From Bugula neritina (taxonomy: Eukaryota; Animalia; Bryozoa): a stretch of 64,000 nt of DNA. The stretch lies in the NCBI GenBank assembly GCA_964035545.1, contig OZ037767.1:19298628-19362627 (forward strand), written 5' to 3'. The notes below the pieces were generated by a model. That model worked only from the letters and a program-made list of their open reading frames with translations, was not told where the DNA came from and searched no databases. The position numbers and the translations under genes are program-made. Positions 54,078 to 56,846 of this stretch are shown one piece after another (the first letter of the stretch is position 1; every line of letters starts with the position of its first letter).

Positions 54078-56846
54078 ATGTTTTGGTCACAAAAGTTTTT
54101 TCTCATTTTCTCCTTAATTCAATTTCTATACCGTAAGTTCCTTTCTAATATCTATGCTTATATAGATCTTAGAATTCACAGTCTCATCTTTTTAGAAAAA
54201 ATATGTTTTATATCAATTTTTCACTTTTGGATATCTGTACGCATTTTACTGGTGTAACCTTACTCTTTTCACTATAATATGATTGTTGATTGATCATTTC
54301 TAGTTTTTAAAACTACTGAAGGAGGAGGAGGTGGAAGTTTTGGTAGAAGGTGGCACTGGGGGAGAGGGCGTGGGAGGGGTGGCAACAGTTGGCGTGGGTA
54401 TGGAGGTAGTAACTCAGGAGGGGGAGGGTACTGTGATTACACTACCACCCCCACTTCCTCTCCCAGATCTCAGTCTACTCTATTGACTGAATCTGCTAGC
54501 ACTGCTCTAGCACCTGTCTTGTTGACTACCAATACAACAGCTGCTCACAGGAAGTCTCTCTCCGCAACAACAGTAGCACCTTACACATCTGAACTTCTTT
54601 CAACCCTGCAGACTGATCTTTATTCAAAAGAGGTTACAACTCCCAAGACGTTCCCAGCAAAGTCCCTGTTCACGAGTTTAACTACTAGAAAATACAAGAC
54701 ACTAGTGAGTTACTGAAAGTAGAATATATATACATGTATATATATATATATATATATATATATATATATATATATATATATATATATATATATATATATA
54801 TATATATATATATATATATATATATATATATATATATATATACATATATATATATATATACATATATATATATCTCAATCTGTGGACAGCAGCTGTTTCG
54901 GGATTTGTCCCCTCATCAGCACAGAACAGAGTATACCATGGCCCACGCCTTTGCAATAGTAGAAACTTATAGTTTTACTAAAGCATATTTAAAAGGTGTG
55001 TAAACTCAAGCCAGAGTGCTCAAGTGACTCTAGGGGTCACCTAGGAGTCACGAGCATTGCAAAATGCTAGCAGCTTGAGTTTGTGACCATGGTGAGAGTG
55101 CTCAATCATTTAATGTCATTGCTGAGCATTAAATGAGAGCGTAATATCTCAATCTGTGGACAGCAGCTGTTTCGGGATTTGTATATATTATATTATATTA
55201 TTATTATATTATATATTATATATATATTATATATATATGTAAAATATAGCATATGTAATGCAGGGACCGACACATATCTCCCAAGAAACAAAAACTACGC
55301 CACTTCATCTTAATGGATACACGACTACAAAACCCACACCCACAGCACCAGTTGAATTTCAGGTTGCGACTTTACCACTAACCAGGTAAGTTTCAGCAAT
55401 TTATTACCTATATTATCATATTTTCTATTTTCATTTTAACAAGTTGTAACTTGTTAATGAAAAGATAACATCTGAAATTGCTATGACTATGACCATGATT
55501 ATGGAGCTACTGCACTATATATGCTATATTATGTGATGTGGGTCTGTATATATACACATGTGTGACTGTCAGGGATCTGCTAGTTTTAGCTTTTAATACT
55601 CATGTATTGTAAAAAAAATAATTTGAACATTCTTCTGGCATTTTATTTGAATTTTGGATTTTGATGTAAATTATTGATATCTAATTTGGAAAAAGATGGC
55701 AAAAGTAATTTTGAAAGAAATATTCATAAACTCATTTTTATTCAAACTTTTTTTCAGTTTGAATAAGAAGAGTTCAACATGGCTAGTGGCTACTATTATC
55801 CTGGCTATTTTGTTGCTGCTGGTAGTTGCAATTCTCGTTGGTCTCATCTACTTAAGTAAAAACAAGAAAAGAAATCAAGTTGATTCAATGTATGCTGTGG
55901 ACACCAAGAAAGCTGCAGACACAAACCCAAAACAACCTGGTTTGTGATAAACAATACTTAAGTTATGTAGTTACACGTGACTGAGTATTCTAAATTAGAT
56001 CGTAAAGTGAAGGAAACATATAGGAAAATATTGAAAAGTATAGTTTTTTAACTAAAAAATTGAAAAGAATATTTAAATATTGGTTACAGTTTACTATATC
56101 CTTGTTTTGATACTTTTTCTCTGTGTTGCAGTTGCACAATAACATGTACTGAAAAAAATCAATAAAACTGCATTCATGAATAGCTTGACTAATAAATATT
56201 TAACAAATACATATGCATTTTCAGACCCTCATTCTGTTGTTAGTATTGAACCAGCAGCAAGATTAGGTTTCTTGTTATTAATCTTTATTGTTTCACTGCA
56301 AAACTTTCCTGATAGCCATGGTAAACTTTTTCAGATATATATGAATCATTTGTGACTGAAAAATCAGGCAGTTCAGAGTGTGCTTCAAAGTTTAAGGAAA
56401 GTCCACCTCCATATCGGCTGGATGCTCCACCGACTTACTCCTCCGTGAGTATCACACACCTACAATCATACATGTTATGTTTGTAATAAACTTATTATAT
56501 AATATAAAATGGTAAATACTCTACTGGTTGGAGTATGGAAGAGATTCTTAGTTCACAGCAGTTAGTGGGTCTATCTGTCTGCTGAATAAGATGTGCACTT
56601 TTTAATTTTATTTGATGATTAAAATGTGTTTGGCATCAGAAGATCTATAATGCTATGAATTATTACTGCATGCAATGGTAAACCTAAGTACTAAGCATGC
56701 TGTTACACCTGCTCTCAGTTGTCTACTTAGATGTTGTCTTCTCTTCAGTTGGTTTGAACAGTTTGAACATAATTTACGAATATTTTAAAGTCAGAAACTA
56801 TTAAAACTGCATGACAATTAAATTCAACTATCTTTAGGCTGTCTAG
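54078..56846 (+). CDS. Unrecognised type I membrane protein: signal peptide, Gly/Arg/Trp-rich tip, Ser/Thr mucin-like stalk, one TM helix, PPxY-containing tail
   Basis: Seven exons join in phase with GT-AG: 54078-54132, 54304-54704, 55264-55385, ~55758-55939, ~56225-56266, ~56335-56444 and 56838-56846. TM segment [25 protein letters not shown] followed by KNKKR. Confidence 0.78.
54724..54873. repeat. (TA)n microsatellite
   Basis: Visible directly. A degenerate TA tract resumes at 55182-55238 on the other side of the ribozyme element. Confidence 0.97.
54870..55182 (-). mobile_element. Retrozyme-like element: 274-nt monomer with a 39-bp terminal direct repeat
   Basis: ATATCTCAATCTGTGGACAGCAGCTGTTTCGGGATTTGT occurs at 54870-54908 and 55144-55182. 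The interior is rich in inverted repeats and is flanked by TA tracts. Confidence 0.8.
54879..54925 (-). ncRNA. Type I hammerhead ribozyme
   Basis: The minus strand reads TCTGTG-CTGATGA-GGGGACAAATCCC-GAA-ACAGCTGCTGT-C-CACAGA. All core nucleotides are present, with stem I TCTGTG/CACAGA, stem II GGG(G/A)/TCCC, stem III ACAG/CTGT and a GUC cleavage triplet. Confidence 0.9.

Follow-up and report, generated by a model that had tools for sequence, protein, structure and literature searches.

How has a hammerhead ribozyme come to lie inside a TA microsatellite of an animal genome, and from what kind of template is it copied? The question is raised by a stretch of 64,000 nucleotides (nt) of the Bugula neritina genome (contig OZ037767.1, positions 19,298,628 to 19,362,627 of the forward strand), which as a whole is called the window below. 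Its minus strand carries an insertion with a complete type I hammerhead, and TA repeats lie on both sides of it. We conclude that the insertion very probably belongs to a young, non-coding family of animal retrozymes without long terminal repeats (non-LTR retrozymes), numbering ~300-450 insertions, and that the window copy is a 5'-truncated member made of 1.09 units and a 15-nt tail. As far as DNA sequence can tell, all testable defining features of metazoan non-LTR retrozymes are present: a type I hammerhead in short head-to-tail repeats (within the 150-450 bp range), many copies, no coding capacity and a low GC content. There is no LTR, primer-binding site or polypurine tract, and the flanks are microsatellite.

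The ribozyme and its family

The core of the hammerhead is complete. It comprises the CUGAUGA and GAAA boxes, the A15.1-U16.1 pair, a GUC triplet of the NUH class and the G10.1-C11.1 pair that closes helix II. Three helices surround this core; helix I is open, and helices II and III are 4-bp hairpins. The internal loop of helix I and loop 2 (ACAAA) form a layout that allows a tertiary contact between loops 1 and 2. An exact direct repeat of 39 nt (54870-54908 and 55144-55182, spacing 274 nt) brings in a second, partial hammerhead. This upstream copy is a 3' half only, starting from loop 2, without the CUGAUGA box and without the 5' strands of helices I and II, and 54885/54884 is the sole predicted cut site at the locus that is served by a complete ribozyme. 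The coordinates are collected in Table 1.

Read 5' to 3', the insertion begins with the terminal 24 nt of a unit (unit positions 251-274), continues with a full unit of 274 nt and closes with a tail of 15 nt beyond the second cut. The usual unit of the family has 271 nt, and the window unit differs from it by an extra C, an extra TA and two substitutions. Open reading frames (ORFs) over the element are TA-repeat artefacts only; the element is non-coding. The first-pass annotation, made from the letters of the window, had described a complete type I hammerhead on the minus strand and, 274 nt upstream, a second instance of its 3' half, and both the reading of the sequence and the 39-nt repeat confirm this. 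It had also called the unit hammerhead-bounded. This holds at the downstream end, where the ribozyme is complete, and fails at the upstream end, where only the 3' half is present, so that two ribozymes in cis would not release the unit.

A hammerhead-like match could arise by chance in AT-rich repeat DNA, and the Rfam models, which stay below their thresholds, speak for such an origin. We regard it as scarcely credible. A strict descriptor (the core, G10.1-C11.1, at least 4 bp in helix I and at least 3 bp in each of helices II and III) found one match in the 64-kb window and none in 300 random windows generated with a Markov-1 model; the same descriptor found no second copy of the family in the window. 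The ribozyme motif with this helix I has 363 matches in the genome, compared with none for the reversed pattern, which refutes a chance match. Moreover, every change seen in helix II preserves the pair, being either G-C to G.U or G.U to G-C.

The family is spread over the whole genome. A 309-nt query gave at least 85 BLAST matches (94-98% identity, from 719 first-look candidates), distributed over all large contigs of a genome of 216 Mb, and a 17-nt junction word across the cut site has 444 genomic matches versus none for the reversed control. Counts based on exact patterns are minimum values. The element has a GC content of 43%; for descriptive statistics, a majority consensus was computed for the non-coding unit.

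The RNA of the unit is predicted to be highly structured. In the circular form its minimum free energy (MFE) is -99.6 kcal/mol (z = -7.8 versus 300 dinucleotide shuffles), with 72% of the bases paired. The isolated hammerhead motif favours a non-catalytic fold in ViennaRNA calculations (-15.6 kcal/mol versus -10.9 kcal/mol for the catalytic one). When two copies are cofolded, they form a double hammerhead whose intermolecular helix III has 10 bp; the energy of this complex is -42.1 kcal/mol, compared with 2 x -15.6 kcal/mol for the separate motifs. With helix I of 6 bp, helix II of 4 bp and a short, palindromic helix III, the hammerhead conforms to the "canonical metazoan" type, which is described as cutting poorly alone and being active as a dimer in tandem transcripts (PMC4209133). 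Given the weak, near-palindromic helix III, efficient cutting probably occurs only as a double hammerhead in multimeric transcripts.

Two sets of results count against the reading as a hammerhead retrozyme. First, the check with Rfam hammerhead models that had been proposed for this locus gave sub-threshold matches only: over the whole window, no hammerhead model reached its gathering score. In permissive runs (E up to 10) over 701 and 93 bases, the best models were RAGATH-1-hammerhead with 15.2 bits (gathering score 56.3) and Hammerhead_3 with 12.8 bits (gathering score 48.5). Their alignments place the core columns correctly, and what is penalised is the very short helix III and the loops. 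Second, covariation is minimal: of 46 pairs one is compensatory, and the covariation term of RNAalifold is ~0. The near absence of covariation is explained by the young age of the copies, and the structure therefore rests on thermodynamics and on one compensatory event, a change of U-A to C-G in hairpin 1 between subfamilies. Another hairpin gains a G-C pair between subfamilies. A metagenome scan for the ribozyme returned no matches. The other Rfam matches (mir-297 and similar) were rejected as artefacts of the TA repeat.

Two main subfamilies can be distinguished, and in addition there are older copies, ~80-86% identical, with decayed ribozymes, which indicates that the retrozyme lineage has long been resident in the genome. 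Such old relatives with decayed cores were seen at L033:2858-3114 (minus strand) and at L061, L062 and L063; one of them is intronic and lies beside an exon resembling Cu/Zn superoxide dismutase. In an array at G000:C1:19014103-19014706 both subfamilies are adjacent, with A-type and U-type hairpin tails and with both helix II variants (U and C), which suggests that two RNAs took part through template switching or recombination. A third hammerhead element, unrelated to the others, was noticed at L034:3790-4510 (G000:C3:15427000-15436000, minus strand). Its spacing is 324 nt and its core is CUGAAGA; it, too, terminates in (TA)n, and on its 5' side lies an inverted copy in head-to-head orientation.

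Table 1. Coordinates of the retrozyme insertion, its ribozyme and hairpins, the host intron and the Penelope-like elements (positions of the window unless a locus is named)
Feature	Position	Strand	Basis or remark
Whole retrozyme insertion, 313 nt	54870-55182	-	BLAST of the unit versus the locus, flank reading, 39-nt repeat
One unit, cut to cut, 274 nt	54885-55158	-	alignment of 35 full units from 26 arrays
5'-truncated upstream unit	55144-55182	-	hammerhead 3' half, second GUC, first 15 nt of the full unit
Second GUC	55161-55159	-	in the upstream partial copy; predicted cut 55159/55158
Complete type I hammerhead	54925-54879	-	sequence reading and strict descriptor
Helix I, 5' strand	54925-54920	-	
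CUGAUGA box	54919-54913	-	
Helix II, 4 bp (GGGG/UCCC), loop ACAAA	54912-54900	-	
GAAA box	54899-54896	-	
Helix III hairpin, 4 bp, CUG loop	54896-54886	-	inside a near-palindrome
GUC cleavage triplet	54887-54885	-	
Helix I, 3' strand	54884-54879	-	helix I has 6 bp plus distal 3 bp
Predicted self-cleavage site, after C54885	54885/54884	-	sequence reading
3' tail CACAGAUUGAGAUAU, ending in AUAU that merges with (TA)n	54870-54884	-	inferred region of cDNA start
Hairpin 1 (unit 19-64): GCUC/GAGC base stem, 10-bp upper stem, UU bulge, then ACUCU	55095-55140	-	MFE fold
Hairpin 2 (unit 104-146): GCUC, stem-loop, UU, GAGC, ACUCU	55013-55055	-	MFE fold and motif search
(TA)n microsatellite, 3' side of the element, target tract	54724-54873	.	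repeat search
Imperfect TA-rich tract, 5' side of the element	55183-55243	.	
Inferred host intron, 559 nt, GTGAGT...AG	54705-55263	+	splice-site and frame reading
First family of Penelope-like elements	L041 (G000:C7:11065717-11069445); also L037-L055	-	
Second clade of Penelope-like elements	L056 (G000:C7:10433500-10439500), L057 (G000:C1:18151500-18157500), L064, L066		

Insertion signature and the copied template

We read the anatomy of the insertions in 23 independent loci (L001-L028). In all 23, a common tail past the cut site, CACAGAUUGAG(A/G)UAU, passes directly into (TA)n, and the 3' ends lie 11-15 nt beyond the ribozyme cut site. Some copies stop slightly earlier, at unit positions 7 or 10. 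Among the 444 junction words, 290 run on into (TA)n, 83 run into the next unit and 71 do neither exactly. The 5' ends vary from unit position 1 to 251 across the loci, and a recognisable TA-type repeat lies immediately 5' of the element in 20 of the 23. Insertions with a constant 3' end and a 5' truncation point that varies bear the footprint of target-primed reverse transcription. In three or four loci out of the 23 the start is at unit positions 6-12, after a whole number of turns, and these starts fit sealing of the complementary DNA (cDNA) by TA microhomology.

On the 3' side the TA tract has a median length of 72 nt and on the 5' side one of 49 nt, a difference short of significance (Wilcoxon p = 0.07 for the 23 loci). 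If the 3' excess is real, the reverse transcriptase might lengthen the tract by reiterative copying of AUAU. Insertion into a pre-existing (TA)n tract is a simpler reading than a 3' tract made by the element.

Most loci hold fewer than two units, and ~80% have no internal junction and thus at most one complete ribozyme. By our own count from the list of loci, ~67 have at least one internal junction (the window copy included), 13-14 have at least two, 2-3 have at least three and one has four. Successive classes of array size therefore drop by a factor of ~0.2, and a constant drop is what is expected for a polymerase with a constant stopping rate on an endless template. Units are 99.6% identical within arrays and 96.3% identical between arrays (35 full units from 26 arrays). 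The near-identity within arrays implies that each array arises in a single event and from a single template.

The same observations bear on a different explanation, in which the family is an ordinary satellite or minisatellite that spread at the DNA level by unequal crossing-over or segmental duplication, the hammerhead being a relic that plays no part in the spread. The tandem organisation agrees with it, and newt-type hammerhead repeats were for a long time termed satellite DNA (PMC7229834). What makes it highly improbable is that ~300 or more separate loci are scattered over all large contigs, each with the constant 3' end, a differing 5' truncation and the same microsatellite target. In addition, most loci are shorter than two units, and the ribozyme core is intact in 363 copies.

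Reverse transcription also limits what the template could have been. Each copy spans the ribozyme, the cut site and 11-15 nt past it, and this requires a template that is intact at the cut site, either a religated circle or an uncleaved RNA; a cleaved linear monomer would give only a run-off cDNA of ~15 nt. The genomic data fit both a circle and an uncleaved linear concatemer or read-through RNA, and the propagation through circular RNA that the first-pass annotation had put forward is thus an inference. A religated circle is favoured over never-cleaved RNA because array sizes are geometric and because circles of such elements were demonstrated in other animals (PMC7229834).

The linear alternative keeps the same element and the same enzyme. 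An uncleaved read-through transcript or concatemer with a 3' (UA)n would prime on nicked (TA)n in the way that poly(A) does for long and short interspersed elements (LINE/SINE). The fixed 3' end beside (TA)n, which is a point against the circle, could be inherited in this way: as every copy passes into (TA)n on its 3' side, a (UA)n tail would be handed on automatically. Furthermore, as a lone ribozyme favours the non-catalytic fold and ~80% of the loci have at most one complete ribozyme, uncleaved transcripts should be common. On the other hand, the ~0.2 fall-off that continues to four internal junctions and the near-identical units fit an endless template better than linear sources that shrink. 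The copies ending at unit position 7 or 10, together with two alternative ends of a Penelope-like element (PLE) described below, suggest internal initiation on a continuing template, and the circles known from other animals (PMC7229834) point in the same direction. We therefore regard a linear template as possible, with a lower probability than its opposite, and go on with the religated circle as the favoured template.

Penelope-like elements and a shared hairpin

A piece of reverse transcriptase from a degraded retrotransposon beside retrozyme copies has at least 150 matches in the genome, with open frames up to 740 aa. The matches fall in two clades that are ~50% identical. We identified them as PLEs by a weak RVT_1 match, by reverse transcriptase and GIY-YIG motifs read in the translation, by homologues and by architecture. 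The best named homologue is a hypothetical protein of the bivalve Solemya velum (54% identity), which carries a GIY-YIG Pfam match. A Pfam search of the genome for GIY-YIG gave one unrelated match of 87 aa only.

The first PLE family is compact. Its unit of 2451 nt is arranged in partial tandem, each terminal region bears a minimal hammerhead with palindromic helix III, and open frames reach 740 aa; copies end in (TA)n at either of two alternative sites ~66 nt apart. The second clade, described from a few loci (L056, L057, L064, L066), has hammerheads of CUGAAGA or CUGACGA type in its 3' region and ends in (TA)n. Every PLE copy examined is 5'-truncated with (TA)n at its end. TA tracts hold nested copies of PLEs together with the retrozyme, and within single tracts short 3' fragments of the second clade alternate with retrozyme copies. 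A microsatellite bias of PLEs is known: in Naiads it is reported to be directed to (TA)n, and for Neptune a Cys-rich linker has been suggested to determine it (PMC8557442). The literature has also treated retrozymes and how they are connected with PLEs (PMC7229834; bioRxiv 10.64898/2026.07.22.740005).

PLEs are likely the mobilisers of the retrozyme. The partnership is suggested by shared behaviour, namely (TA)n targeting and a longer-than-unit, 5'-truncated build, and by a short hairpin motif. Under the mechanism that we propose, the endonuclease and reverse transcriptase of a PLE would nick a (TA)n tract, and the nicked DNA end would pair with AUAU at unit positions 12-15 of the retrozyme RNA. 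Synthesis of cDNA would proceed back over the ribozyme and the cut site, sometimes for another round, and would stop at a roughly constant rate of ~0.8 per unit. The 5' junction of the cDNA would then be joined into the TA tract through microhomology.

Several results speak against this partnership. The PLE proteins have no significant match in Pfam or PDB. The PLE hammerheads are of a minimal type, different from that of the retrozyme. Finally, local alignment of the retrozyme dimer with the untranslated regions of both PLE families did not exceed shuffled controls. Overall homology between the retrozyme and these regions was considered and dropped on account of that alignment, and only the short motif was retained.

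The resemblance of the two kinds of element raises the question of whether the retrozyme is a solo terminal repeat (pLTR) or a 3' fragment of an autonomous PLE. The PLEs of this genome do have terminal hammerheads, heavy 5' truncation and (TA)n ends, and a 2026 preprint derives vertebrate retrozymes from the pLTRs of PLEs (10.64898/2026.07.22.740005). The failure of the retrozyme dimer to align with PLE untranslated regions above shuffles and the different, minimal motif of the PLE hammerheads are evidence for separate elements. Besides, a non-coding unit of 271 nt is repeated up to at least four times without an ORF, and the sequence directly 5' of the element is a TA-type repeat in 20 of the 23 loci and PLE sequence or an ORF in none of them. 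A fragment of an autonomous PLE is thus very unlikely.

The first-pass annotation had proposed a slightly more than unit-length copy of a non-autonomous hammerhead retroelement family, had suggested a BLAST search for its dispersed and tandem copies, and had named PLE termini as the alternative to an independent retrozyme. Its reading stands in these respects. The search returned several hundred dispersed copies and arrays with up to four internal junctions; the copies have no coding capacity, a fixed 3' end, variable 5' truncation and (TA)n on both sides, PLEs are co-resident, and the absence of significant similarity to PLE untranslated regions and the TA-type repeat in place of an ORF on the 5' side favour independence.

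The short motif common to both kinds of element has the frame GCUC, a variable hairpin, UU, GAGC and (A/U)CUCU. There are 803 matches to it in the genome versus 15 for the reversed control, and some of the matches sit in unrelated contexts. The motif occurs twice per retrozyme unit, with the first copy beginning 3 nt past the tail, and its A/U variant switches jointly in both retrozyme hairpins between subfamilies. In the first PLE family, which has two insertion ends, it stands a few nucleotides beyond the longer one, and beyond the shorter one there is a hairpin of similar form, ACUC...UU-GAGU. In the second clade it lies just past the end of the element (L064, L066), and it is present in the 5' regions of both PLE clades.

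We tentatively put forward that the hairpin might be a signal for the template choice and the start point of the PLE reverse transcriptase, a role for which religated or uncleaved multimeric RNA would be needed in cis. Seen from the start point, the hairpin is located downstream and across the cut site, so that only a circular or an uncleaved multimeric RNA would present it in cis.

The window copy, related systems and significance

In the window, the retrozyme is antisense within a predicted intron of a gene on the plus strand. The exons on both sides are in frame, one ending at 54704 and the next beginning at 55264. The host pre-mRNA would therefore carry the complement of the ribozyme and not the ribozyme itself. 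A transcript of the minus strand of the locus could be cut at 54885/54884. For a unit to be released, the one catalytic half would have to act on the upstream site as well, and a double hammerhead would not form in cis. The presence of just one complete ribozyme and the antisense intronic position make the window copy most likely an inert, dead-on-arrival insertion rather than a source of circles.

The intron consists almost entirely of the TA tract and the retrozyme. The product of the host gene (54331-56486, plus strand) appears to be a single-pass membrane protein that is rich in Thr and Pro, like a mucin, and carries PPxY-like motifs in the tail. Elsewhere in the window, an ORF of 524 aa with integrase zinc-binding and integrase core domains (35-1609, plus strand) belongs to an LTR retrotransposon, and further long ORFs of an LTR element lie at 10703-17181.

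The class of elements to which the family belongs is already known. It was described in 2020 (Cervera & de la Peña, PMC7229834), and its link to PLEs was discussed in 2014, 2020, 2021 and 2026. The metazoan non-LTR retrozymes of coral, mussel, axolotl and other animals (PMC7229834) share with the present family a type I hammerhead in short non-coding tandem repeats (150-450 bp; 271 here), a low GC content (43% here) and the lack of an LTR, a primer-binding site and a polypurine tract. They also occur as dimers to multimers in many dispersed copies, their unit RNA is highly paired, and PLEs are found in the same genomes. The differences are that RNA circles were shown for those elements, whereas the present family is known from DNA; that long arrays were reported for them, while most loci here hold fewer than two units; and that the present data resolve a strict (TA)n target and a 3' end located 11-15 nt past the cut. 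The main text of PMC7229834 does not contain the word "microsatellite".

PLEs and the hammerheads of their pLTRs (PMC4209133, PMC8557442) resemble the retrozyme in their longer-than-unit partial tandems, 5' truncation, microsatellite bias and a hammerhead upstream of the 3' end. In this genome the two also have in common the GCUC-hairpin-GAGC-WCUCU motif. In contrast to PLEs, the retrozyme has no ORF and carries a canonical hammerhead (6-bp helix I, 4-bp helix II) instead of the minimal PLE type, and the overall sequences have no significant similarity.

Satellite 2 of newts and Sm-alpha of Schistosoma are similar in that short non-coding repeats carry a type I hammerhead whose helix III is weak and which works as a double hammerhead when transcribed in tandem; they differ in sequence and host. 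Plant LTR retrozymes and viroids of Avsunviroidae are likewise small, highly structured hammerhead RNAs, with a circular form as a replicative or transposition intermediate. In plant LTR retrozymes, however, the hammerheads are of type III and lie in LTRs, and these elements have a primer-binding site, a polypurine tract, target duplications of 4 bp and Gypsy helpers; Avsunviroidae are infectious, replicate from RNA to RNA and have no genomic DNA copies.

To the known class this family contributes an insertion signature that is sharply resolved, and a hairpin, also present in PLEs, that is a candidate for recognition. Its hundreds of young copies constrain the mode of copying, which involves a template with an intact cut site and priming by TA microhomology. 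For the annotation of the genome, the family explains many non-coding islands within (TA)n tracts, including intronic ones. It also makes accessible to experiment the role of hammerheads in Penelope-like elements and the reason why these elements form partial tandems. If the hairpin is indeed a signal that only circular or uncleaved multimeric RNA presents in cis, hammerheads would gain a function in Penelope-like elements, and their longer-than-unit copies would be explained.

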